Below are positions 3,962-54,525 of a stretch of 64,000 nucleotides of DNA, one piece after another; position 1 is the first letter of the stretch; each line of letters opens with the position of its first letter. The position numbers and the translations under genes were made by a program. The DNA lies in the sequence record KT919973.1; one strand, 5' to 3'. The notes below the pieces were generated by a model. That model was not told where the DNA came from. It made no database searches and saw only the letters and a program-made list of their open reading frames with translations.

Positions 3962-4326
3962 GTTGTAATTTAATGGAACGCCTCGCTGATGAATATCGAA
4001 AATCAGACGTGTATGACCCTGATTTGCACTGTGATATTTTTGCTATCCCTGTTCAAGAAGACGGCGAAATGGATTCGATATACATCAAAGAAGCATTGTA
4101 TGGTGTATATAATGAGATTCGGCGCTATACTGGCATGTCGCTAGACGAAGCCAAGGAATGGTTTAAAGTTCAAGAAGTTGAAACGTGGTTTGGTGAATCA
4201 AACACTGTAAACGAAAAAGTTTATAACACGTTTTTCGTGCGTTATGATATTCCTGACGAGTTAGTTAAGCAACAATACTCTGAGTGGAAACAAGGTCCCT
4301 CGGCAACAATTAAGGAATCATTTTGA
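3958..4326 (+). CDS. hypothetical protein
   Basis: ATGA overlap with the upstream stop. Confidence 0.65.
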   Translation: MSCNLMERLADEYRKSDVYDPDLHCDIFAIPVQEDGEMDSIYIKEALYGVYNEIRRYTGMSLDEAKEWFKVQEVETWFGESNTVNEKVYNTFFVRYDIPDELVKQQYSEWKQGPSATIKESF

Positions 4327-11396: not shown

Positions 11397-11550
11397 TCTC
11401 GGTGATGTTACAATGCCTGCATTGTACCTGAAAGAGCAAGATGCACTTAAAGTGTTGTACAAAAATGATTTACACGAACAGTGCTTTGTTGCACGTGTTC
11501 GTCCTGAAATTTATATAGAGGGTCCAGATGATTCTACCAATCCTGAATAA
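11347..11550 (+). CDS. hypothetical protein
   Basis: GAGG RBS; overlaps both neighbours. Confidence 0.5.
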   Translation: MMFAILMKSNQEVAIIDLGDVTMPALYLKEQDALKVLYKNDLHEQCFVARVRPEIYIEGPDDSTNPE

Positions 11551-12865
11551 ACTAGCAGCAACGACTAAACGCACTGAAAAAGAAGCAATCCTGAAGTCTG
11601 AAAAAGACAATGAATTGCTAAAGCGTGTATTTGAGCTTGCATACACACCTACGTATCAGTTTAATATGAAGAAACTGCCTGAAGTGAATGCAGGTGAAGC
11701 ATATGTGCATGAATATACCGAACTAGAAGATGCACTAGAGCAAGTGTTTAGTGCGTTGGTTGTGAATCAAGTGCGCGGTCATTCTGCACAAGATTTTGTT
11801 GCTCGTATACTCGCTTCAGTTTCTGAAGACGACGCGGAAGTGATTCGTCGTGTTATCTTGAAAGATCTTCGAACTGGTTGTACGGGTGGTACTGCAAACA
11901 AAGTTTGGAAGAAACTGATTCCAGAACAACCTCAAATGCTTGCAAGCCCGAAGAACGACAAACTAATCGACGCGATTCTAACTAAAATCGCATACGCTGA
12001 ATTAAAAGCTGATGGTGCTCGTTGTTTCGCTCATGTTGACTTAGATGGTAACATTACTCTTACATCGCGTAACGGTAAACGCTATCAAGGTCTAGTCAAA
12101 GTTGAGAAAGGCTTGACTGAAATGGGTGTAAACGGCTTTGTTATCGACGGTGAGCTTGTGTACGCGCCAAACGGTTTACATGAGGTTGAAGACCGTTCGA
12201 CTGGTAATGGCATTGTCAACAAAGCAAGTAAAGGTACAATCACACCGAAAGAACAGGCTGACATTGTATTTCAAGTATGGGATATCATCCCTGAAGACGT
12301 TTATTTCGGTAACTCGAATGAATTGAACATGCCGTACAGTAAACGTAAACAGATTCTTGCAGATGTTGCTATTAAAGCACGTGGTATCATCGAACCGATT
12401 CCGTGGCAGACTGTTTCTACAAAAGAACAAGCATCTGAAATCTACAATCAGTACGTTGCTCAAGGTCTAGAAGGTATCATCTTGAAAGACCCAGATGCAC
12501 TCTGGGAAAACAAGCGAAGCAAATCACTTGTGAAATACAAAGAAGTTCACGATGGTGATTTAGAGATCATTGAAGTAATCGAAGGCGACAAGAAGAACAA
12601 AGGCAAAATGGGTGCTCTTCTTCTTCGTTCAGCTTGCGGTATGTTGATTACTAAAGTCGGTAGTGGCTTCAGTGATAAACAGCGTGCTGAAATTTGGGAA
12701 CGTCGTGATGAAGTAATCGGTATGATTGTTGAAATCAACTACAACGCAATCACACGCGCACGTAATAAAGAAACATGGTCTTGTTTCTTGCCTATTTTCG
12801 TGCAATTCCGTGATGACAAAGATGTTGCGAATGCGCTTGAAGAAATGAGCGGGTTCAAAGGTTAA
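11528..12865 (+). CDS. 30: ATP-dependent DNA ligase
   Basis: AELKADGAR adenylation motif, IDGEL, EGIILK, OB-fold VGSGFSD. Confidence 0.96.
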   Translation: MILPILNKLAATTKRTEKEAILKSEKDNELLKRVFELAYTPTYQFNMKKLPEVNAGEAYVHEYTELEDALEQVFSALVVNQVRGHSAQDFVARILASVSEDDAEVIRRVILKDLRTGCTGGTANKVWKKLIPEQPQMLASPKNDKLIDAILTKIAYAELKADGARCFAHVDLDGNITLTSRNGKRYQGLVKVEKGLTEMGVNGFVIDGELVYAPNGLHEVEDRSTGNGIVNKASKGTITPKEQADIVFQVWDIIPEDVYFGNSNELNMPYSKRKQILADVAIKARGIIEPIPWQTVSTKEQASEIYNQYVAQGLEGIILKDPDALWENKRSKSLVKYKEVHDGDLEIIEVIEGDKKNKGKMGALLLRSACGMLITKVGSGFSDKQRAEIWERRDEVIGMIVEINYNAITRARNKETWSCFLPIFVQFRDDKDVANALEEMSGFKG

Positions 12866-12867
12866 TA

Positions 12868-12889
12868 AAGGGGGCTTATGCCCCTTTTT
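12868..12889 (+). terminator. intrinsic terminator
   Basis: GGGGC-TTAT-GCCCC followed by T run. Confidence 0.75.
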
Positions 12890-12900
12890 GCGTTTGTGCG

Positions 12901-12908
12901 TATAAATA
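12901..12908 (+). promoter_or_regulatory. gp55-dependent late promoter
   Basis: exact TATAAATA 23 nt upstream of ATG 12932. Confidence 0.85.
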
Positions 12909-12931
12909 CTTTCATTTAGAGAGACAATAAA

Positions 12932-13819
12932 ATGATTATATTCGAGGGATATGACGCGCTATTTGAAGCGTTTGATAGAGCAGCGAATTATGACTGGCTG
13001 ACCGACGACGAAGCGTTTTTTGAAATCGGCGGGACTATGTATAAAGCAATCATAACTAGCAAAGATGAAGCACGCGGACGCATAATTGACGTTTCATTTA
13101 TGTGGAAAAGACCAGATGGTCAGTATTCATATGAATTAAAGAAATCGAGCAACGCGAAAGATTCATTGATGGTAATGAGTACGGTGCTTGCAGCTACGTT
13201 TGACAAGGCTAAACGAGAAAACCCAGATTACATTACATTCAGCGCATTTGCAGACCATGACGACAGAGATGCAAAGAAACGCTATAATCTTTATAAGCGC
13301 ATGGCTGAACGATACGCAAAGCAGATGGACTATACTTTACAAACGCACGGGCGTATGTTTGTATTAAAAAACAACAACCCATCTAATGAAATTAGACGAC
13401 TACCAAATGATGGTATTAAAGTCGAAGATGAGATCACATATGTTGATTTCCCTAGAGTGAACGCATTCACATGGGCGACGCTATTTGAGTGTGAACGACC
13501 TGGTGATTTTGAATTGATTCGTATGACAAATGGGTTCGCTACAATCAAACGAGTTAATGATAAAACAGTTCAAATTAAAGCATCAATCAATGGTAATAAA
13601 TTTGATAATTTAGACACGGTTGAAATATGGGAAAGTCTGCTAGGTACTATTATTGCTAAACCTGCATGGGGTGGTGATGGAGAAGCTGAATTACTAGAGA
13701 AGGGCGCGATTCTAGAAGATGGTAAAATGCTGATTCTTGACTACAACACACTTTACATGGTTGAAAAGGTAAGCGACTTTGAAGAAGTTTGGGGTCATAG
13801 TCTTATTAGAGTTGAATAA
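12932..13819 (+). CDS. putative internal head protein, paralog of the 48401/48859/49781 family
   Basis: late promoter; N-terminus MIIFEGYDALFE-AFDR; shared domain STV..ITFSAF.D..KRYNLYKRMAERYA. Confidence 0.7.
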   Translation: MIIFEGYDALFEAFDRAANYDWLTDDEAFFEIGGTMYKAIITSKDEARGRIIDVSFMWKRPDGQYSYELKKSSNAKDSLMVMSTVLAATFDKAKRENPDYITFSAFADHDDRDAKKRYNLYKRMAERYAKQMDYTLQTHGRMFVLKNNNPSNEIRRLPNDGIKVEDEITYVDFPRVNAFTWATLFECERPGDFELIRMTNGFATIKRVNDKTVQIKASINGNKFDNLDTVEIWESLLGTIIAKPAWGGDGEAELLEKGAILEDGKMLILDYNTLYMVEKVSDFEEVWGHSLIRVE

Positions 13820-13845
13820 AAAAGGGAGCAAATTGCTCCCTTTTT
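13820..13845. terminator. bidirectional terminator
   Basis: AAAAAGGGAGC-AAATT-GCTCCCTTTTT between convergent genes. Confidence 0.8.
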
Positions 13846-13848
13846 CGA

Positions 13849-15477
13849 TCATGGTGTTAGAGGACTACGCTCTTTTGTTAGTCTATCTGCATCGATATCT
13901 ACATCAACAGAACGCATGAAATTGGCTACTTCTGAAAGCTCGTGTAAACGCTCTTGCTTTTTGAAAGCAGACAATACACCTTGCTTCGTATCTTCTTTGA
14001 TTTTCAATCGAATTACAGCGTCGTATTCAGACATTTGAACAACGTCAGCTTCAAACATCGTATTACGGTTGATGATAATCTCTTTTGAGTATTTCATACC
14101 GTGTTTACCTGAAGCTAAAACAGGCAAGCCGCTCGCTTCTATGATGAATACAACATTCATTTTCTTATCTGACTCAAGCAGAGAACGCATATCTGATTTA
14201 CTATTCTTAGCAGTTGAATCAATGATGTTCTTAGAGCTTGATTCAACGAACTTACAAGCAACAAGAGGGTCGATTGACGTTGAGATAAACGCAGTCGAAA
14301 CAAACGAGCCAGATTCAAGAATAGAGCGCACATGTTTACTTGACATTTCACAGCCACGATATAACGTCATTCCACCAGCAATCATACCAGCTTCAGAAAA
14401 CGCTTGGTCGATGCGTGAGACAATCTGTGATTCTTTATCAACACCCGTTCCGTGTAATAACTCTTCATTCACCTTCCATGAAAAACGAGTCGCGGAGTAT
14501 CTAGCAATAGCAGCTTGTGTAAGTGACGATAGACCCGCAAATGAATCTTCCTGCATAAGTTGCAAAGAAAGACGTTCATACTGACTTGCATGAGCACGTG
14601 AGCGAGATTCCATGATACTATTCAGAACGCTTTGAGGCTTCTTCGATTCGGCGATATATGAATTCAATGAAACTGCCACAGTTTCAAGATTCAAACTCAT
14701 ATCAATTAAACCTTTCGCAGCATTAGCAAGAACATGTTCATTGCTTTCATTCAATTGAGAACGAACAGACGAACTTACACGCGCTTCATATTGAGGCATT
14801 TGAAGAACATCATTTGGAACACGTGCAGCGGGGTTTTCTTCTACCCATTTACCTAGTACGTCATCTTCATAGTCGTCATACGCAGCATCGGCAGTTACGA
14901 TAATCGTTTTCTTGCTTGAAATATCAGTTTCGAGTGACATTTTTAACGCAATATCGTTAATTGTTTCTTCAGATGCTTCGAATAGCTTATCGGCATTATA
15001 CCCTGGTTTGGTTACAATAAAGAAGCTGTAATCTTGCGAAATTTCTTCACCACCCACGCCAATGATCTTAGTTGTATCACAGCCGTAACGTAGCTTTTTA
15101 AACAACGTTTTAACGCGCAAGTCGAACATCTTACCCGTACCTAGTTTCTGCACACGCATTGAAACGACATTCGCACGACGTTTGATCATGAAATCTTGAA
15201 CCACTTTAACAATAGTTTGTTGAAGCTTTTGTTCATCTCCCATTTCACGAATAGTAACACCGCCTTTTTTGCCGCGCATTGCTGATACAGTACAGAACCA
15301 CGCACGTTTACCGCGATTTCCGATATCTGATTTTGTTTTAGTTGTGAACGAAACAACGATGTCTCTGGCTTCGCCTTTCATGTCGATCACAAAGAATTTG
15401 TTTTCTTTGGTCGAGCGAGCCGGATAATAGTCGTACGTTGCGCTCATGTTTTCATTTAATTGTTGAAATCCAATCAT
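13849..15477 (-). CDS. alt: Alt-like ADP-ribosyltransferase (virion protein)
   Basis: C-terminal ART motifs LYRG, FISTS, YSKEII; N-terminus MIGFQQLNE; CATAAATA late-like promoter upstream on the minus strand. Confidence 0.8.
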   Translation of the reverse strand: MIGFQQLNENMSATYDYYPARSTKENKFFVIDMKGEARDIVVSFTTKTKSDIGNRGKRAWFCTVSAMRGKKGGVTIREMGDEQKLQQTIVKVVQDFMIKRRANVVSMRVQKLGTGKMFDLRVKTLFKKLRYGCDTTKIIGVGGEEISQDYSFFIVTKPGYNADKLFEASEETINDIALKMSLETDISSKKTIIVTADAAYDDYEDDVLGKWVEENPAARVPNDVLQMPQYEARVSSSVRSQLNESNEHVLANAAKGLIDMSLNLETVAVSLNSYIAESKKPQSVLNSIMESRSRAHASQYERLSLQLMQEDSFAGLSSLTQAAIARYSATRFSWKVNEELLHGTGVDKESQIVSRIDQAFSEAGMIAGGMTLYRGCEMSSKHVRSILESGSFVSTAFISTSIDPLVACKFVESSSKNIIDSTAKNSKSDMRSLLESDKKMNVVFIIEASGLPVLASGKHGMKYSKEIIINRNTMFEADVVQMSEYDAVIRLKIKEDTKQGVLSAFKKQERLHELSEVANFMRSVDVDIDADRLTKERSPLTP

Positions 15478-17234: not shown

Positions 17235-17474
17235 ATGATAACGATATACACAATTCCCAACTGTGACGGCTGTCGTCACGCAATTTCCCTCTGTAAGTTC
17301 AAAAACGTCCCGTACACTGTAATAGAGTTACAGTCTCAATCTGATATCGATAAATTGCATGAGAAACTTGGTGGGGTGCGCAACATTCGCGTGCCTCTTG
17401 CTATGCATGGTGATACATACATAGGTCATCTTCCAGAACTCAAGCAATGGGTTGATAACCAGACATATAAATAA
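17235..17474 (+). CDS. glutaredoxin (NrdH/NrdC-like)
   Basis: TIYTIPNCDGC CxxC motif, VP..YIG. Confidence 0.88.
   Translation: MITIYTIPNCDGCRHAISLCKFKNVPYTVIELQSQSDIDKLHEKLGGVRNIRVPLAMHGDTYIGHLPELKQWVDNQTYK
17466..17473 (+). promoter_or_regulatory. late promoter
   Basis: exact TATAAATA upstream of the gp24-like gene. Confidence 0.85.
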
Positions 17475-30264: not shown

Positions 30265-30276
30265 TATTTATAAATA
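30265..30276. promoter_or_regulatory. palindromic bidirectional late promoter
   Basis: TATTTATAAATA contains TATAAATA on both strands, between the endonuclease and regA. Confidence 0.7.
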
Positions 30277-40394: not shown

Positions 40395-40467
40395 TTAAAT
40401 CCCGTCGGTTAAGACGGGATTTTTTGTTTTGTCTAAATAGAAGAAACAACATTAAAAGGTTAATTAA

Positions 40468-41919
40468 ATGAAACAATTTAACGAATTTTATCAAGAAGTT
40501 CGCCTTGATGAGATTTCTGATCGTGCGAATATCGACATTGATTGGGATTGGGGTCATGAGAACGGGACGGGCGAGACTTCAGCGAGATTCGACGCTGCTG
40601 GTGAGCGATTTGAAGTTGGTGTTGAAGAAAGCAACCCTGGTTATTTCACTATTACATTCCAAAACTCAGGTGGTTATGCTCAGACAGGTAAAGCAGGACA
40701 CTCTGCGGCTGCGGTATTCTCTGGTGTATTGACGACTCTACGTGAATTCACCGAGACGTATGAAGAAGAAATGGGCATGAAGCCGTATGAATATGACTTC
40801 AGCGCAGCTTATGAACTACCAAAGAATCACGAGTACTACGCACTTGTTAACAATCGACGCGAAGCGACTCGTTTAGATGAAGAAAGCAAGAAGAAGCTAT
40901 TGAAAGACTTGATTTCTCGTCCGATGCTTTACTACGCTCTATCGTTGACGTTTGGTAAAGAATACGGCTATTCGACTGACATTAGCGACCGTTGGCTTGC
41001 ACGTCTAGCAGGCGGTGCAAACGATTTCCGCTCTGTTCGTAAGAACGTGACGCGCAGTATTCTTTCAATGAGCGACAGCGACGTTAACCAAGCGTTGATG
41101 AGCATGAGTGGTTCTGTCTCTTTCACACTTACTAACGAGAACGAGCGTGCTAGTAGCTACGATACAGCATTCGGTGGCGGACCGTCTCTTGAAGATTTTG
41201 TTGATGAAGCAGATCAATATCAAATCGAAGCATGGATCAATGAAGGTCGTGAAGATGAAATCATTGAACACGCAGATTGGCAAACTCTAGTTCGTATTGC
41301 TAGTTGGGGTCTGATGCACGAAGAGCTGATTTTCCACGATGACGAAGACGTTCGTGCAGCGGTAGTTGAGTCAGATTACGAAATGGGCGATAAACTTGCT
41401 TCATCTGGCGATTGGCAACACCGTAAACAAGCTGCGGACATGGGTTTTGGTATTTGGGATCTTGTTCTTGACTCAGATGAAGATGTACGGGACACAGCGT
41501 GGGATTGGTCATTCTCAAACGACGATGCAGACACACGTATCACATATGCGAAACGCTACGAAAGTGAATTCGGTCGCGATATGGCAGAAGATATCTGGGA
41601 TAGAATGATCGATGATACAGATGATTACGAAGAACGCCAATACGTAGCCGAACAAGGTTATCGAGTTGAGGAACTTCTAGCAGACCATGATGAAGACGTG
41701 CGCGAATCTGCAATTGGTGCGGTATTTAACGTACTGGGGTTAGATGGTCGCGAAGCTGCTGAGTTCTTGATGAATAACTCAGATCCATATCAAGAAGAGG
41801 TGTTTGAATACGCTATAAATGGTAACTTCGGTCCGTCATTTGATGAAGCACTTATTGAGCTTGCTGAAGAAAACGGCGTTGATGTATCTGAGTACAAAGA
41901 CGACGAAGACGAAGAATAA
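40468..41919 (+). CDS. putative internal head protein with HEAT-like repeats
   Basis: MKQFNEFYQE start, CTAAATA upstream, three D(D/S/H)DEDVR repeats. Confidence 0.7.
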   Translation: MKQFNEFYQEVRLDEISDRANIDIDWDWGHENGTGETSARFDAAGERFEVGVEESNPGYFTITFQNSGGYAQTGKAGHSAAAVFSGVLTTLREFTETYEEEMGMKPYEYDFSAAYELPKNHEYYALVNNRREATRLDEESKKKLLKDLISRPMLYYALSLTFGKEYGYSTDISDRWLARLAGGANDFRSVRKNVTRSILSMSDSDVNQALMSMSGSVSFTLTNENERASSYDTAFGGGPSLEDFVDEADQYQIEAWINEGREDEIIEHADWQTLVRIASWGLMHEELIFHDDEDVRAAVVESDYEMGDKLASSGDWQHRKQAADMGFGIWDLVLDSDEDVRDTAWDWSFSNDDADTRITYAKRYESEFGRDMAEDIWDRMIDDTDDYEERQYVAEQGYRVEELLADHDEDVRESAIGAVFNVLGLDGREAAEFLMNNSDPYQEEVFEYAINGNFGPSFDEALIELAEENGVDVSEYKDDEDEE

Positions 41920-45023: not shown

Positions 45024-45100
45024 CTTTTTTCTCGAATTCGGTTGACTGTATTACTTATTTAGGTTAATATCTATCGCATCGAAACGAAAGAGAGAACACT

Positions 45101-47177: not shown

Positions 47178-47306
47178 ATGAAAAAACTTTGGCTTTCATT
47201 AGCATTGTTATGTTCTACTGCGTCAACGACAGCGGCTACATTCACGGGACTACCGGCTGAAGGTGTCAAAACACCGAGTCCTTTAATTAAAGAGTCGCCA
47301 CTCTAA
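47178..47306 (+). CDS. 42 aa putative secreted peptide (absent from the ORF track)
   Basis: MKKLWLSLALLCSTASTTA-ATFTGLPAEGVKTPSPLIKESPL; AGGT RBS; signal-peptide-like. Confidence 0.55.
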   Translation: MKKLWLSLALLCSTASTTAATFTGLPAEGVKTPSPLIKESPL

Positions 47307-47527: not shown

Positions 47528-47833
47528 ATGAGACGACAAATCAATAGAATGAAAAACGATAATGGTGATTTCGAGCGTTATATGCGCACGCAAGCAGCTA
47601 GATACGCTCGAAGAGAGATCATCAACAATATAGCCGATGACAATGACATCTTCTTAGTCGGTTCTTACACGATGTACAAAGATTGTGATGAAAAGGTTGT
47701 TCTTCAGCTTGTACGATACGCAGGTTACGAGCGTGCTGAAGTTAAAGCAGTGCCGATTGTCGGTAGTCTTGTTGATTGTGTTAATGTCATTCACGGTGTT
47801 GGGTTTAGAGTGGTGCTAAATAATGATAGTTAA
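47528..47833 (+). CDS. hypothetical protein
   Basis: GAGGT RBS then ATG at 47528. Confidence 0.65.
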   Translation: MRRQINRMKNDNGDFERYMRTQAARYARREIINNIADDNDIFLVGSYTMYKDCDEKVVLQLVRYAGYERAEVKAVPIVGSLVDCVNVIHGVGFRVVLNNDS

Positions 47834-48110: not shown

Positions 48111-48404
48111 ATGAGAGAAGCAATTGCATTATTGAAAAACACGAAGATGAGTTATACGGACATTAGCGCATTCGGCGACCCCGTAGTATATGTTCATGCA
48201 GGCCATGAAACGATTTTAAAGGTAGAATACACTGAAGATTGCTACTCATTTTTCGATTACAGAAGCAAGTATCTCTATACTGAACAGTCAATCGACGACT
48301 TAGAAATACATTTAAAATCAATAGATGTCGGTCTTGATGATGATCTACCATTGAATGGTAATATCGACAAAGACACGATACCAGACGGGGAATTTTTAGA
48401 GTGA
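48111..48404 (+). CDS. hypothetical protein
   Basis: AGGT RBS, 97 aa. Confidence 0.65.
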   Translation: MREAIALLKNTKMSYTDISAFGDPVVYVHAGHETILKVEYTEDCYSFFDYRSKYLYTEQSIDDLEIHLKSIDVGLDDDLPLNGNIDKDTIPDGEFLE

Positions 48405-48850
48405 AATTTAGCGAATATCAAAACGAGCTAACAGAAGCATTTGATCGACCAGCACAGATCACAGCACGACGTGGCAATAAGAGCTTTTTTAACGTCGGTG
48501 ACAAACGTTACATCGTCGAACTCGCATATGAAGAATACGATAAATCTATAAATGTTGAGTTTATGTATATGTCCCCAGAATCACCAACATGGAGCTATAA
48601 TCTCGCGAAAGGCGATGCTAGAGACGCGATTACAGTTTTTGCAACTGTTATATCTGAAATTGAAGAATTAATGCGTAGCAAAGATGTAAATTATATACAT
48701 TTCAACGCATTTAGCGATTCGAACGCGGATGATTATCGTAAGAGACTTAGTGTATACAAACGTATTGCAAAACGATTTGCTGATGAACTTGGGTTTAAGG
48801 TTGTGTATGACATGGGTTCTATTTCACTTGAAAGATTGGATAAAAGGTAG
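48401..48850 (+). CDS. putative internal head protein paralog 1
   Basis: MKFSEYQNELTE-AFDRP; shared family domain only. Confidence 0.7.
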   Translation: MKFSEYQNELTEAFDRPAQITARRGNKSFFNVGDKRYIVELAYEEYDKSINVEFMYMSPESPTWSYNLAKGDARDAITVFATVISEIEELMRSKDVNYIHFNAFSDSNADDYRKRLSVYKRIAKRFADELGFKVVYDMGSISLERLDKR

Positions 48851-48858
48851 AGTTTAAA

Positions 48859-49779
48859 ATGAAATTTAGCGAATATCAAAGACTCAACGAGTCGTTAGAT
48901 CGACCAGCGAAATATAAACTCGTCCGAGAGTTACCAAATTTAAACGTGTATGCGTTTCAAGTTGATGGTGTTTATTATGAAATAGACATACAGAAAGGCA
49001 TTATACGTGAACCGAACGGGATGAAGTCGATTAAGGCTGAGGTGTCGTTCAAAGCTCTTGATGGTAGCGGTTATAATCTAACTAAGAAAGATGATAAAAC
49101 AGCACGAGTCGTATTATCAACGGTTGTCGATGCGATTTTCAGTTTTGTTAGAGACAATTCACCTGCTCAAATAACATATAGCGCGTTCAATGACGCTGAT
49201 CAGCGTGATGCAGATAAACGTCTCAGACTGTATAAGATCATGACAAAGGCGAAACTTAGAGAATTCCCTCAGTATGATTACAGAAACGTAGGTCGTGAAT
49301 TTATTGTGTATGATGTGGGTTATCAACAACGTGTAGATGACTTTTCACGTCGAGCACGTCGTCCAGTCGGGTTTGAAGAACATAGCGACCATGTTGAAGT
49401 TAATTTATCTCACGCCAATGCATATGCATTTGTAAGAGCGTTTGAAGTTGAAGATGGTTCGATGATTAGTGGTGTTCTAGGGCAAGGTCGTGCAGTTGTA
49501 AAAGCGGCTGACGAAATTGCAGCTAGGTTACGTGTAAATCGCGTTGTGTATGAAATGTCGGACAGGGAAGGTTGGTTAGCAGCACTACAGCACCCAATTT
49601 TCGACTATGGCGAGGGTCCCGAAGAAGATAGAACATATCTGGTTGGTGCATTCAAGAACTTCTATATCGTCTTGACTAGTCAAACAAGTCTAAAAATATA
49701 CACCGACGATGCGGCGTTTACCAAATACGTGAATGCATTCGACGCGCCGTGGTTAAACCCAGAAATAATGGAATCTTAA
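48859..49779 (+). CDS. putative internal head protein paralog 2
   Basis: MKFSEYQRLNE-SLDRP; family domain plus C-terminal domain. Confidence 0.7.
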   Translation: MKFSEYQRLNESLDRPAKYKLVRELPNLNVYAFQVDGVYYEIDIQKGIIREPNGMKSIKAEVSFKALDGSGYNLTKKDDKTARVVLSTVVDAIFSFVRDNSPAQITYSAFNDADQRDADKRLRLYKIMTKAKLREFPQYDYRNVGREFIVYDVGYQQRVDDFSRRARRPVGFEEHSDHVEVNLSHANAYAFVRAFEVEDGSMISGVLGQGRAVVKAADEIAARLRVNRVVYEMSDREGWLAALQHPIFDYGEGPEEDRTYLVGAFKNFYIVLTSQTSLKIYTDDAAFTKYVNAFDAPWLNPEIMES

Positions 49780-49780
49780 A

Positions 49781-50656
49781 ATGAAATTTAGCGAATATCA
49801 AAACGAACTAACAGAAGCGTTTAACCGCGCTGCACCCATAACAGCACGACGTGGTAATCAGAGTTACTTCGAAATAGACGGCGCTGAGTATATGATTGGT
49901 CTGTATTATGAAGAAGATCGCAAAGCTCTAGGCGTGGATTTTATGCATAAGCCAACGGGTGCAATGTCTTACAATTACAGCCTAGCAAAGGGTGATTCTA
50001 AAGACGCGATGACTGTTTTCGCCACGGTTATTTCTGAAATTAAGCACGTGATGCAAAACAACATCGTAAATCGAATCACATTCGCAGCATTTAATGACAC
50101 AAATCGTTCTGATTCCCGTAAGCGTACTCGATTATACAAAAGAATGGCTGAACGATTTGCCAAAGATTTAGGTTTCAAATTGAGAGTATCAAATGAATCT
50201 GAAGGTGCGTCATTCGTGATGGAACGAATCGTTCCTATTGAAGACCCAAAGCCTGTTTACACTGATAACCCGACTGGTTATGATACAGAAATGGGAACTG
50301 AATTGCTCGATTTACCTACAATTAACGACGCTGCTATTGTTAAAGTAACGGGTGGTGATGGTATTTGGTATCTTCGTGGCGGTCACTCGTTAAACATCGA
50401 AGCTGGTATTGTTGAACTTTCGGCAGGTAGCATCAATGATGATGTTGCTTGGTATAAATCATTTTACACGTTAGAGTGGTATTATGAACCTGAAGACGAG
50501 CTTTTCTACGATGATGAGCAACGTATAGCAATGATTTCTGGTAAGATCTGGGTAATCAATGGAAATGAGATCACCGTTTGGAGTGATGTTAGTTCTCTTG
50601 AAGCCCAAAGTGATTCGAAATTGAGTCAAACAACGTTAGAACGAATTGGTGCTTAA
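49781..50656 (+). CDS. putative internal head protein paralog 3
   Basis: MKFSEYQNELTE-AFNRA; family domain plus C-terminal domain. Confidence 0.7.
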   Translation: MKFSEYQNELTEAFNRAAPITARRGNQSYFEIDGAEYMIGLYYEEDRKALGVDFMHKPTGAMSYNYSLAKGDSKDAMTVFATVISEIKHVMQNNIVNRITFAAFNDTNRSDSRKRTRLYKRMAERFAKDLGFKLRVSNESEGASFVMERIVPIEDPKPVYTDNPTGYDTEMGTELLDLPTINDAAIVKVTGGDGIWYLRGGHSLNIEAGIVELSAGSINDDVAWYKSFYTLEWYYEPEDELFYDDEQRIAMISGKIWVINGNEITVWSDVSSLEAQSDSKLSQTTLERIGA

Positions 50657-50667
50657 ATTAAATACAG

Positions 50668-50693
50668 AAAGGTAGCTTCGGCTACCTTTTTTC
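50668..50693 (+). terminator. intrinsic terminator with CUUCGG loop
   Basis: AGGTAGC-TTCG-GCTACCT followed by T run. Confidence 0.85.
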
Positions 50694-51353: not shown

Positions 51354-51671
51354 ATGACTACATTCAACGTTAACTTCACTGCTGCAATCGAACTTACTTC
51401 TAAAGAATTCGTTGAGACGAATCGCATCAAAGGTCGTTTCTTCAATTCAATGGTTGGTCATGAGCAAGGCGAGCACGCATTAACTGCGCCGATTGAATCA
51501 TTCAAAGTAATCGACAACAAAGTATACGCAGAGACGCGCAACGCAGTATATCACATTCGTAACCTATCTGCTGTTGCTCTTGCTGACTTCAACACAATCA
51601 ACGCACCAGTTTACGTAAAAAAAGCTGATGCGCAGTTTGATGAACTAGTTAAATCTGCTCTGTTATCGTAA
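51354..51671 (+). CDS. hypothetical protein
   Basis: GAGAG RBS. Confidence 0.7.
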   Translation: MTTFNVNFTAAIELTSKEFVETNRIKGRFFNSMVGHEQGEHALTAPIESFKVIDNKVYAETRNAVYHIRNLSAVALADFNTINAPVYVKKADAQFDELVKSALLS

Positions 51672-52123
51672 TGTACCCGAAGAATAAAAGCTATTATGAC
51701 TTGGTGTATCTTGACATCGCCAAGTCATTTGCTAAGAAAAGCACCTGCAAGCAGAAGCAAGTAGGTGCTGTCATCGTCAAGAATGATCGTATTATCTCAC
51801 ACGGTTACAATGGTGTTCCTGCGGGTGTGACACACTGTAACAAAATCGAAGACTATGGCGATTTATCACATCGCGAATGGTCAGAAATTCACGAGATACA
51901 TGCGGAACAAAACGCGATTTGCTACGCTGCACGCGCTGGCATATCTACTGAAGGCGCGACTATGTATGTTACAACGTCGCCGTGTCATAACTGTGCCAAG
52001 CTGATAGTCGCGGCTGGTATCAAAATTCTCATTGTAGGTTCGATTTACAGCGGTTCACAACCCGATTGGTGGCATTGGCTAGATGCTCGTGGTGTGAAAG
52101 TTATTATGTTCGAAGACGAATAA
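51671..52123 (+). CDS. cd: dCMP deaminase
   Basis: STC..QVGAV, GYNG, HAEQNAI, SPCHNC. Confidence 0.95.
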   Translation: MYPKNKSYYDLVYLDIAKSFAKKSTCKQKQVGAVIVKNDRIISHGYNGVPAGVTHCNKIEDYGDLSHREWSEIHEIHAEQNAICYAARAGISTEGATMYVTTSPCHNCAKLIVAAGIKILIVGSIYSGSQPDWWHWLDARGVKVIMFEDE

Positions 52124-52177
52124 TGTTTAATATAAGTAATTCGGACTTATAATAGAGCTTTAACAAGAGAGAAACAT

Positions 52178-53110
52178 ATGAAAAGTACAATGTTTTTAAA
52201 CAACATCACATGCATCGATCACGCATACGTTGATGAAAACGGTAAAATTAACGGTATGAGTTACAATCTATGTGTTGAAATCACCGGCGAAGTAGATGAA
52301 ACTGAGCAAGTCGTAATTGACTTCAGCGGTTGCAAGAAAGCGATCAAGCAGTTAGTAGACGAATCTGAACACGCAATTGATCACCGTCTAGTTCTTGTCA
52401 ACGGATACAGTGAATATGTGTTAAGCGATATTGAAAATCGTGACCGTACACAAATCGACTCTCCGTTATTCACTGCTGTTTCGTCTGTCAATGACTGGTA
52501 TCAAGAGATCGTCGATGTATCGCTATTCGATACTGATCTTCACATCCCGTCGGATACGCTGTACATGAACTATCTAACCGAGTATCTTGAAAATATGTTG
52601 CTGAAGCAGCTTAAACTACAAGGCTATCCGGTCACACACGTCACTGTAGAGCTTTCAGAGAGCTTTGACTTGCCATCATGGGCAAACACGCACGTTTCAT
52701 TTCATTACGCTCATGGCTTGCGTTCTAGCTCTTCTTATGGGTGTCAGAACATTGCACATGGACATCGTTCGTTCATTGCAGTTGATGCCATGTTAAACAG
52801 TCGTGGTCGCAAAGTACTGGAGCGCATTGCTGAAGAAATGAGCGGCTACATCGTATGGAACGACAATCTAACTGCGGAAGGTGCGGTAGCGTATTGTTCA
52901 CAGCGTGGTAATTTCTATTTGAACATCGATTCAGAAGAAACAATCGTAATCAACACTGAAACTACAGTTGAAAATCTCGCGAACTACATTGCAAAAACAT
53001 ACGAAGACGAGTTTCAGCGTATGGGTGTACAGCGTGTATGGGTATCTGAAGGTCTTTCGAAAGGCGCAGTCGTTGACATCAAAATCAACAAAGAATTACT
53101 CTATAAGTAA
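52178..53110 (+). CDS. queD: QueD/PTPS-like CPH4 synthase, tandem T-fold
   Basis: CIDHA..IDHR and HYAHGL..CQNIAHGHRSF, TTVENL; adjacent to folE. Confidence 0.75.
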   Translation: MKSTMFLNNITCIDHAYVDENGKINGMSYNLCVEITGEVDETEQVVIDFSGCKKAIKQLVDESEHAIDHRLVLVNGYSEYVLSDIENRDRTQIDSPLFTAVSSVNDWYQEIVDVSLFDTDLHIPSDTLYMNYLTEYLENMLLKQLKLQGYPVTHVTVELSESFDLPSWANTHVSFHYAHGLRSSSSYGCQNIAHGHRSFIAVDAMLNSRGRKVLERIAEEMSGYIVWNDNLTAEGAVAYCSQRGNFYLNIDSEETIVINTETTVENLANYIAKTYEDEFQRMGVQRVWVSEGLSKGAVVDIKINKELLYK

Positions 53111-53126
53111 TCAACAATTAATGTTT

Positions 53127-53149
53127 AGTAGCACGCTTCGGCGTGCTAT
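53127..53149 (+). terminator. UUCG hairpin
   Basis: TAGCACGC-TTCG-GCGTGCTA. Confidence 0.6.
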
Positions 53150-53177
53150 TATTGTTTTCTGACTAAGAGGAAATAGA

Positions 53178-53852
53178 ATGTTAGACAAAAATAAAGTAGA
53201 TCCAATTCTTGGACAAAAAGTTGAAGCGCATCTTCGTGAAATCGGAATGCACACGCCGACTGTTGAAAACGGTCTAACTGATGATGAAAAGAAAGTAATT
53301 CTTGAAGATCGATTCACTGACATCATGCAAGCTCTAGGTCTTGACCTTACTGACGATTCGCTTGTTGATACACCGAAGCGTTGGGCTAAGATGATGGTCA
53401 ATGAACTCATGAGCGGTCTATCACCAGATATGTTCCCTAAATGTACTGCTGTAGACAACAAAATGAACTACGATCAGATGGTTTGTGAAAAAGGCATTAC
53501 TGTTCTTTCACAATGTGAGCATCACATCGTAACAATCGACGGCTTTGCAACAGTCGCATATATCCCAAATAAGAAAGTACTTGGTCTTTCTAAGATGAAT
53601 CGCATCGTCGAGTACTTTGCTCGACGCCCACAGATTCAAGAGCGTTTGACTGTTCAAATCGCTGAAGCACTGAAGTTCATTCTTGAAACTGAAGACGTGG
53701 CGGTGATGTTAGACTGCAAACATTATTGTGTCAAAGCGCGTGGTGTTGAAGACAACAACTCAAGTACTGTTACAAGTCATCTATCAGGTGCGTTTAGAAA
53801 TGAGCCTGAAGCACGAGCAGAATTTATGTCTCTTGCTCGTTCACAGGCGTAA
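53178..53852 (+). CDS. folE: GTP cyclohydrolase I
   Basis: DTPKRWAKM, SQCEHH, GLSKMNRIV..ARRPQIQERLT, HYCV..RGV. Confidence 0.97.
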   Translation: MLDKNKVDPILGQKVEAHLREIGMHTPTVENGLTDDEKKVILEDRFTDIMQALGLDLTDDSLVDTPKRWAKMMVNELMSGLSPDMFPKCTAVDNKMNYDQMVCEKGITVLSQCEHHIVTIDGFATVAYIPNKKVLGLSKMNRIVEYFARRPQIQERLTVQIAEALKFILETEDVAVMLDCKHYCVKARGVEDNNSSTVTSHLSGAFRNEPEARAEFMSLARSQA

Positions 53853-54525
53853 CGTACCAATCTTTGAACTTAGCCGATGTGTATTTCACGCATCGGTTAT
53901 ACACAGTAACATTAGTGGTATTATTAGCTTCGGCTGCTAAACGAGACGATTCAAACACCCCGTTTGGCGTGTGAAATAGATACTTCGATTGCGGGTTTTG
54001 ACTCCCGACTTTAGACTTAGCGAGTTTTCGCTTATGTTCTTCAGTTTTTGTCGTTCCCTTCAGAACACCTTTGCTCTTCGCAACATATTCACCACGAAGA
54101 TAGCGTTCGTCGTCAACTCGAATGTATTCAGTTTCACCAGTAGCAATGCATATCGCAGCAAACTTACCTATATGATGCTTTGCAGCATCTTTTCTAGCAT
54201 CTTTTGTCATCGACTCAAATAGCCTAGAGTTCATATTGAACTCGCGTTGCTGTGAGCCGTTCGACATATTGAATGCTGTTAGTGCAAACTTCAGGCGATG
54301 TTTCAAATTTCCATTGAACATTTTAGCCAATAGCAAATGAGCTATATAATGCTCACGTGCTGTCAATCGCACTAGGTTATGTGATTCATCACTACCACCC
54401 GCACATTTAGGTAAAATGTGATGTTTTTCACTATAGCCGTCGGGTGTGTTTTGAATTCGATTCTCGATTAGAGAAATGTACCATTTCGTGTATTTGTTTA
54501 GTATAAGATTGTCGTGTGTTAACAT
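53824..54525 (-). mobile_element. free-standing HNH (Mob-like) homing endonuclease
   Basis: EKHHILPKCAGG..NLVRLTAREHYIAHLLL; TATAAATA on the minus strand at 54559-54566. Confidence 0.88.

Follow-up and report, generated by a model that had tools for sequence, protein, structure and literature searches.

The last 64 kb of the genome of Vibrio phage phi-ST2 (KT919973.1), a KVP40-like, T4-type myovirus of the genus Schizotequatrovirus, contains part of a multi-gene family that is built on one protein module and is widespread in large phages. In a tandem array, members of this family vary in copy number and exchange alleles within boundaries set by a conserved sequence cassette at the gene starts. 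The 64,000-nucleotide stretch is referred to here as the window, and a window position equals the record position minus 186485. The array holds three paralogs, designated A, B and C; D and F are found elsewhere in the window and E outside it. The genes are annotated in their record as encoding hypothetical proteins, and the sole catalogue entry for the domain is that of a domain of unknown function (DUF). The explanation favoured here, at a probability of roughly 40%, is a split deployment of the family, in which the array would be expressed early, and D, F and a gene for a protein resembling the T4 ADP-ribosyltransferase (ART) Alt would be expressed late.

The array begins at the 3′ end of a short gene, designated U, and consists of the following elements.

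48111..48404, plus strand: gene U (phiST2_0359), 97 amino acids; its stop codon overlaps the start of the first array paralog in every relative examined
48401..48850, plus strand: paralog A, 149 amino acids; GTG start overlapping the stop of U; domain alone, of the C-type lineage; phrog_27801
48402..48422, plus strand: cassette copy 1, exact 21-mer
48859..49779, plus strand: paralog B, 306 amino acids; domain and acidic C-terminal part (isoelectric point, pI, 4.9); phrog_6387
48860..48880, plus strand: cassette copy 2, exact 21-mer
49781..50656, plus strand: paralog C, 291 amino acids; domain and acidic C-terminal part (pI 4.05); phrog_6387
49782..49802, plus strand: cassette copy 3, exact 21-mer

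The cassette is the 21-mer TGAAATTTAGCGAATATCAAA, which an earlier note on this DNA had reported as identical at 48402, 48860 and 49782; three exact plus-strand copies were recovered at these positions, where they form bases 2-22 of the open reading frames (ORFs) of A, B and C. No further copy with up to three mismatches is present in the window, 0.03 being expected by chance. Copies 2 and 3 are also identical in the six nucleotides (nt) 5′ of the 21-mer (TTAAAA), so that they have 27 nt in common. The first seven codons are identical in phi-ST2 A, B and C; elsewhere, B and C rarely use the same codon even at identical residues. The genes are joined by overlaps or separated by gaps of 1-8 nt, and in the AlphaFold model of A the cassette encodes the first helix of the domain. 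Two simple accounts of the array were rejected: its guanine-plus-cytosine content (40.1%, versus 40.8% for the window) does not mark it as foreign DNA, and A is not a recent duplicate of C, as the two are merely 57% identical.

The content of the array differs among related phages at the same syntenic site after U. Phage nt-1 has a C-type gene only, VH7D, Va3 and KVP40 have B and C, and phi-ST2, ValKK3 and phi-Grn1 have A, B and C, with A found in these last three only among the phage collection. The survey of copy number across relatives that the earlier note had suggested thus finds a site with 1-3 array genes rather than an invariant single locus. In every relative the first gene, whichever paralog it is, begins on a cassette that overlaps the stop codon of U, and the internal junctions are also formed by the cassette; the junction between U and the first gene is the same in phi-ST2, VH7D, Va3 and nt-1 though the gene that follows differs. 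A cassette at every gene boundary is the pattern expected from recombination between cassettes.

Exchange of an allele is seen between phi-ST2 and Va3, which are 99-100% identical in U, B and phiST2_0365. The Va3 allele of C (Va3_020) is 62% identical to that of phi-ST2, and the replaced segment of about 1.35 kb extends from a left breakpoint about 120 nt inside C to near the end of phiST2_0364. Within the same segment, Va3 has a gene of 199 amino acids and phi-ST2 one of 64 amino acids (locus L001 4900-6260). Between phi-ST2 and KVP40, B is 87% identical (KVP40.0115) and C 58% (KVP40.0116), and the neighbouring genes are 75-98% identical. From these contrasts in identity B, D and E are regarded as stable orthogroups, C as a fast-evolving or exchanged gene, and A as a lineage-specific addition. 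Recombination-driven variation, proposed in the earlier note for a diversifying locus, is supported by the presence of one to three genes, by boundaries that fall on the cassette and by the swapped C allele of Va3; free swapping of cargo is not, because relatives retain B, C, D and E as old orthogroups. The B cassette of KVP40 has two synonymous differences from its C cassette, and its start codon is ATG, at a junction where GTG is used in the other four phages; exact identity of the cassettes is therefore not obligatory. The annotated start of KVP40.0116 lies 33 nt 5′ of the cassette ATG and overlaps KVP40.0115 by 31 nt (NC_005083.2 locus 4292-4325), and translation more likely starts at the cassette ATG, position 4325. 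Scans of IMG/VR with an exact pattern, a degenerate pattern and a profile returned KVP40 and VH7D only.

The members of the family outside the array are the following.

12932..13819, plus strand: paralog D, 295 amino acids; domain and beta-rich C-terminal domain; without cassette; between the ligase and Alt-like genes
40468..41919, plus strand: paralog F, 483 amino acids; domain at residues 1-192 with an insert of about 30 amino acids; pI 4.17
KT919973.1 153623-154543, minus strand: paralog E (phiST2_0234, outside the window), 306 amino acids; domain C-terminal, N-terminal part unrelated and basic

In BLASTP comparisons of the N-terminal 135-150 or so residues, A and C are 57% identical (E 2e-51), A and D 33% (E 2e-18), A and B 32% (E 3e-12), B and C 36%, and C and D 33%. 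The homology of a domain common to A-D, as claimed earlier, is thereby upheld, and its length is about 145 amino acids instead of about 120. D, which had been pointed out as a fourth copy at 12932, is a true paralog although it has no cassette. The description of the domain as followed by no tail or by varied C-terminal parts also applies, A being essentially the domain only and B, C and D having different ends. These C-terminal parts are strongly divergent, with homology demonstrable in part only: profile-profile comparison gives a probability of 70% for B versus D (E 4e-5), 15% for B versus C (E 2e-3) and no signal for C versus D. PHROG 6387 spans B, C and D in full length, and the PHROGs matched by the window paralogs (6387, 27801 and 16075) are all of unknown function.

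F is related to the family by hhalign (probability 94%, E 1e-7) and by a local hidden Markov model (HMM) search (E 4.5e-8); its C-terminal part is very acidic (pI 4.05) and has HEAT-like repeats at a sub-threshold match. An HMM made from the four window domains missed F and the N-terminus of the Alt-like protein, and a 36-sequence profile recovered both. E is located about 3.5 kb from the major capsid gene; its sequence is unchanged (100% identity) in the closest relatives, and the identity falls to 62% with the counterpart in KVP40. Scans of Pfam and PHROG-type libraries gave no match to an ART domain in A-D, E or F. By sequence comparison, the phi-ST2 family comprises at least six genes, or seven with the Alt-like gene; the total of four copies given earlier fell short by F, E and probably the N-terminus of the Alt-like protein. 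A-D and F are acidic proteins (pI 4.2-5.7).

DUF6934 (PF22028) is the sole Pfam family matched by all window paralogs, with no other meaningful match. The scores are 18.9 bits for A, 17.1 for B, 17.3 for C, 15.3 for D, 24.2 for E and 14.2 for the Alt-like protein. The curated gathering cutoff of the family is 27 bits, and with 15-24 bits A-E are therefore outliers of an extended DUF6934 family. Membership is reached via intermediates: proteins found with the window profile reach 38-163 bits on DUF6934, 28 of the 36 aligned solo relatives match it, and multi-repeat relatives exceed the cutoff. As judged from these profiles, the module of about 145 residues, predicted to be of the alpha/beta type, is a distant DUF6934 member. 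Searches of NCBIfam and PADLOC gave no matches for the window paralogs, a word-based homolog search with C found 7 close relatives only, and sequence searches for relatives of solved structure, with C alone and with the family profile, returned noise only. No informative literature on DUF6934 was found, nor any published description of a link of the domain to Alt, of its tandem-repeat giants or of a variable array.

Among 1.84 billion representative proteins, the four-domain profile retrieves 866 at E ≤ 1e-3 and 82 at E ≤ 1e-10, mostly on large phage contigs. The domain occurs alone (about 140-180 amino acids), at the N-terminus of proteins of about 280-310 amino acids, or as 2-5 tandem copies in proteins of 400-2215 amino acids. 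In the multi-repeat relatives the repeats are interspersed with or flanked by separate GNAT and DUF192 domains and a sub-threshold ParB-like match, and two of these relatives lie on contigs of 210-332 kb together with genes for a lysozyme, a T4-type spanin, ClpB and a family B polymerase. The metagenomic proteins P0017, P0016, P0020 and P0012 consist almost wholly of 3-5 back-to-back copies, P0017 (460 amino acids) being exactly three, and each copy in such repeat-only proteins opens with a conserved hydrophobic-x-Glu motif. Across 293 domain instances, conservation by alignment column (numbering of A) is as follows.

Glu-12: 91% (all aligned instances)
Leu/Ile/Val two residues before Glu-12: 83%
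Phe-54: 95%
Phe-101: 96%
Arg-115: 91%
Tyr-119: 98%
Loop T-G-x-G-D: 68/59/-/82/58% by column

A-D retain all of the near-invariant residues and neither of the loop glycines, which are retained in E together with the Gly-rich loop.

An AlphaFold model of A based on the 36-sequence alignment has a mean predicted local distance difference test score (pLDDT) of 87.8 and a predicted template modelling score (pTM) of 0.81. Its order of elements is a helix (residues 3-14), a five-strand meander, a helix, a strand, a helix and two strands. In a Foldseek comparison with the PDB, the best matches are the GNAT-like acetyl-CoA-binding C-terminal domain of Mycobacterium tuberculosis ICL2 and Rv1916 (E 5e-4 to 4e-3, template modelling (TM) scores 0.33-0.42, probability 0.99 for ICL2), and RimJ-type acetyltransferases stand lower in the list (E about 0.09). 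None of the 36 family members matches a GNAT Pfam or other GNAT sequence model, and the GNAT matches in the giant relatives lie outside the repeats. With no matching sequence model and marginal fold matches, GNAT is a plausible remote fold relation in which membership is not established. The similarity concerns the order of elements in the C-terminal half; the N-terminal half, a helix and a five-strand meander, is unlike the ICL2 and RimJ domains, the TM scores are low, and A-D do not have the GNAT motifs. The hint of a GNAT-like fold that the earlier note drew from an 'LYKR..LGF' ending, which is indeed found in C, thus has weak structural backing, to which the sequence models and the Gly loop are opposed.

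Against predicted viral structures, Foldseek gives 39 matches at E ≤ 1e-3. Those with TM scores of 0.53-0.68 are parts of multi-domain proteins named ADP-ribosyltransferase, zeta toxin, cytidine deaminase and ParB/Srx; a match named 'structural protein' is weaker (TM 0.43), and the 'NAD-arginine ADP-ribosyltransferase' of the T4-like Shigella phage SP18 falls just beyond the 1e-3 cutoff (E 1.8e-3). The AlphaFold model of D (pLDDT 85) has two domains, at residues 1-147 and 162-295. Sliding-clamp matches of this two-domain model in Foldseek, at a TM of about 0.1, were rejected as noise, and the C-terminal domain has no credible PDB match.

The gene convergent with D provides a probable connection to an injected phage enzyme.

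13849..15477, minus strand: Alt-like ADP-ribosyltransferase, 542 amino acids; ART at residues 276-541 (PF03496, phrog_802); convergent with D

Residues 1-115 or so of this protein are probably a strongly diverged copy of the domain. The N-terminus matches DUF6934 at residues 15-131 (E 0.045) and the family HMM at residues 1-112 (12.6 bits), hhalign against the family gives E 8e-4 with a probability of 24%, and in a reciprocal search with an HMM of residues 1-150 about 54 family representatives outrank the first of 422 decoy ORFs in an identical register. The agreement in register of four weak sequence tests is taken as support for the link to Alt. The T4-type Alt proteins of phages phiAS5 and Ac42 also have weak N-terminal matches in register, and Leu-7 and Glu-9 are invariant in the Alt-like family. 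A MAFFT alignment of five full-length proteins placed the Alt-like protein meaninglessly and was not used. GenBank probably places the start of the gene (window 15447-15477, minus strand) 30 nt too far 3′; all of 10 aligned relatives agree in the longer N-terminus (Met-Ile-Gly ... Leu-x-Glu). The neighbourhood of alt and the DNA ligase gene (gene 30; window 11528-15477) is shared by Aeromonas phage phiAS5 and by Acinetobacter phage Ac42, which has a tandem duplication of alt; KVP40-like phages have D as an insertion between alt and the ligase gene.

The split in time is suggested by the following promoter-like and terminator-like sites.

45042..45070, plus strand: sigma-70-type promoter-like site, TTGACT, 17-nt spacer, TAATAT; consensus match
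50666..50691, plus strand: intrinsic-terminator-like hairpin of 11 pairs and a T run, at the 3′ end of the array
12867..12890, plus strand: terminator-like hairpin after the DNA ligase gene, which sets D apart as its own transcription unit
12901..12908, plus strand: exact T4-type late promoter motif TATAAATA, 24 nt before the ATG of D
13820..13845: hairpin where the convergent D and Alt-like genes meet, probably terminating transcription in both directions
40432..40439, plus strand: TCTAAATA, one mismatch from the late motif, 28 nt before F and after a hairpin at 40397-40425

The sigma-70-like site follows a divergent minus-strand gene, in the intergenic gap from which the co-directional cluster with the array begins. 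On the plus strand between 46500 and 51500 the first strong terminator-like hairpin is that at 50666, with a weaker site of 6 pairs at 47751. A motif scan found no TATAAATA within or just before the A-B-C array, in agreement with the earlier statement that no late promoter is visible there, and the neighbours of the array are of early type, with an nrdA.1-like gene upstream and cd just past the terminator. The arrangement of terminator and TATAAATA before D is kept in the KVP40 ortholog (23 nt before the start) despite divergence of the protein, and TATAAATA also precedes the gp24-like capsid vertex gene, at 17466. Upstream of the Alt-like gene is CATAAATA, a near-consensus late promoter that is likewise kept in KVP40. 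On these consensus motifs alone, the array would be early and D late. At 30265-30276 two exact copies of TATAAATA overlap on opposite strands and may be divergent late promoters. In the early cluster upstream of the array is a 42-amino-acid ORF with a signal-peptide-like hydrophobic N-terminus (phiST2_0355, 47178-47306, plus strand). At 51671-54400, 3′ of the array, are genes for a dCMP deaminase, an annotated NADPH-dependent 7-cyano-7-deazaguanine reductase and GTP cyclohydrolase I; dPreQ1 and methyl-dPreQ1 have been measured in phi-ST2 DNA, and the start of its DpdM gene was found to be miscalled (PMC10516641).

By analogy, the array resembles known schemes in which a conserved front end is joined to variable cargo, namely the T-even internal proteins and the MuF-fused or polyvalent effectors. 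T4 Alt is packaged in the head and ejected (PMC9026906, PMC5512222). Together with the internal proteins it belongs to the prohead core, and these proteins have N-terminal propeptides of 7-65 residues that are cut after Glu before the proteins are ejected (PMC9026906). A 10-residue targeting sequence suffices for loading (PMC9026906, PMC3012670), and the T-even internal proteins have diverse bodies behind the conserved targeting sequence (PMC3012670). The phi-ST2 proteins are like IPI, IPII and IPIII in having a short conserved N-terminus, diverse bodies, variation between phages and a motif of the Leu/Ile-x-Glu type (PMC3012670, PMC9026906). They are unlike them in that the N-terminus is the first helix of a fold of about 145 amino acids, whereas that of T4 is a 10-residue tag, in that the array has no late promoter, and in that the proteins are acidic and those of T4 basic. 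No relation to the T4 internal head proteins was found in Pfam, PHROGs or NCBIfam. The Leu-x-Glu motif, at residues 9-12 in A-D, 13-15 in F and 7-9 in the Alt-like protein, is short and lies within a predicted helix.

Polyvalent and MuF-fused effectors, as described in PMC5512222, are resembled by the multi-domain relatives of 400-2215 amino acids, by the existence of solo counterparts, which that paper reports for other domains of polyvalent proteins, and by fold matches named zeta toxin, deaminase and ART. Compared with the polyvalent proteins of the same source, the window proteins have 1-2 domains, while the jumbo-phage relatives have 3-5 repeats and other domains. No link of the window proteins to MuF, a portal or a relaxase was seen, and term searches of Iyer et al. 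2017 (PMC5512222) did not find the domain. In its lack of a late promoter and in the 1-2 domains of its proteins, the array departs from defining features of the internal-protein and the polyvalent scheme, respectively.

A further parallel is offered by the ART family of T4, which is used at two times, Alt being the packaged late form and ModA and ModB the early forms. The phi-ST2 family would likewise be used at two times, the Alt-like protein probably starts with the domain, and D adjoins it. The parallel is imperfect in that A-D and F are without an ART, so that the common part would be a non-ART N-terminal module, and in that the homology to the N-terminus of Alt is weak.

In the split deployment favoured here, the module in A-D would probably be a non-catalytic, GNAT-derived docking or scaffold domain, the absence of both loop glycines being taken as a probable loss of catalysis. 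Its partners would be none (A), an acidic beta-rich part (B, C and D), an acidic HEAT-like part (F), an ART (the Alt-like protein) or an unrelated N-terminal part (E). The late products would be D, F and the Alt-like protein, which are candidate passengers of the head that would enter the cell along with the DNA. The early products would be A, B and C, made from one translationally coupled transcript and active in the infected cell, probably in host takeover or counter-defence. As comparison of the relatives shows, the conserved 5′ end supplies the homology for gain, loss and exchange of array genes between related phages.

Several points weigh against this explanation. The near-invariant Glu-12, Phe-54, Phe-101, Arg-115 and Tyr-119 (91-98%) are all kept in A-D, which could thus still be enzymes, and the GNAT similarity is marginal. 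The link to Alt is weak in every single test, and the Foldseek matches to ART-named viral models may lie in any part of those proteins. A literature search found no virion proteomes or transcriptomes of KVP40-like phages, and the timing derives from consensus motifs only. The sole experimental datum for the domain family is gp135 of phage PA5oct, a solo homolog of 141 amino acids (family HMM E 1e-27) annotated as 'structural protein; ESI-MS/MS' (electrospray ionization tandem mass spectrometry). The PA5oct paper describes such an analysis of phage particle proteins in which 93 were detected, seven enzymes among them being called virion-unrelated, and because the list includes these enzymes the detection of gp135 is soft evidence. 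For the injected proteins proposed in the earlier note the outcome is accordingly divided: at the level of the family there is partial support in the exact late promoter motif of D, the near-consensus motifs of F and the Alt-like gene, the probable Alt-like link and gp135, and for A-B-C the early-type unit without a late promoter speaks against it.

It is unlikely that all members, A-C included, are head-internal and ejected, with the first 12 or so residues as a targeting sequence removed by protease and the cassette as its DNA. This possibility draws on the invariance of Leu-10 and Glu-12 in A-D, on the Glu found in every aligned instance of the 293 with Leu, Ile or Val two residues before it in 83%, on the invariant Leu-7 and Glu-9 of the Alt-like family, on the cleavage of T4 propeptides and targeting sequences after Glu (PMC9026906) ahead of diverse T-even internal proteins (PMC3012670), and on the particle-derived annotation of gp135. 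However, A-C lie among early-type genes without a late promoter, the N-terminal residues form helix 3-14 of the model, and a motif of three residues is not very specific. Internal repeats, and phages that are likely to have different proteases, show the same conservation of the Glu, which suggests a role in structure or catalysis and not a site of cleavage. The acidity of A-D and F (T4 internal proteins are basic; PMC9026906) and the absence of any internal-head-protein family from the libraries scanned add to these objections. More speculative, and rather improbable, is an extension in which the DUF6934/Alt-N module would serve T4-like and jumbo phages in general for head loading or ejection, in the manner of MuF, and would take any fused cargo into the capsid; the hydrophobic-x-Glu motif would then be a prohead protease site in repeat polyproteins and the array a hypervariable depot of cargo, which may include ART, HEAT-like repeats, acidic beta domains, GNAT, deaminase and zeta toxin.

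The domain could also be a working GNAT-type enzyme, or a binder of acyl-CoA or nucleotides, with different targets, packaging not being a property of the domain; this too is judged unlikely. The ICL2 acetyl-CoA-binding domain and Rv1916 as best PDB matches, with RimJ-type enzymes lower, are in its favour, as is the C-terminal half of the model, whose strand-helix-strand-helix-two strands fit the GNAT core. In the family a Gly-rich loop precedes a long helix, the helix after that contains Arg-115 and Tyr-119, and in GNATs the pyrophosphate loop and the catalytic Tyr are at these places. A precedent is Rac, a GNAT enzyme of phiKMV-like phages that acetylates RNA polymerase (PMC7824862). Opposed to it are the low TM scores, the failure of all 36 members to match a GNAT Pfam model, the lack of a PDB relative by sequence and the loss of both loop glycines in A-D. 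Bona fide GNAT domains are separate and adjacent to the repeats in the giant proteins, so the repeats are something else, and 3-5 tandem copies are more typical of binding or structural modules. Compatible with any of these accounts, and itself judged quite improbable, is the idea that cassette identity stems from selection on the mRNA, as an AU-rich translational operator (for example of a RegA-type repressor) or a need for translational coupling. The seven identical codons in A, B and C with few common codons elsewhere in B and C, the identity of B and C from 6 nt before the ATG, the annotation of a RegA gene in the window region and the tight packing of the genes would fit this. It is countered by the two synonymous differences and ATG instead of GTG start of the KVP40 B cassette, by the family-wide conservation of the N-terminal peptide, which explains most of the conservation, and by the mapping of gene gain and loss to the cassettes, which mRNA selection alone leaves unexplained.

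Should the array genes be ordinary early cytoplasmic factors, they would still constitute a well-delimited, still uncharacterised phage gene family. Gain, loss and exchange bounded by the cassettes offer a clean natural case of a conserved gene start that serves as a recombination joint. If the identity of the N-terminal part of Alt holds true, the unexplained half of a classic injected enzyme would be named and placed in a family with 866 representatives. One module would then be seen in use for different accessory proteins in KVP40-like and many marine jumbo phages, and the family would provide a handle on how large phages choose the proteins that travel with their DNA.

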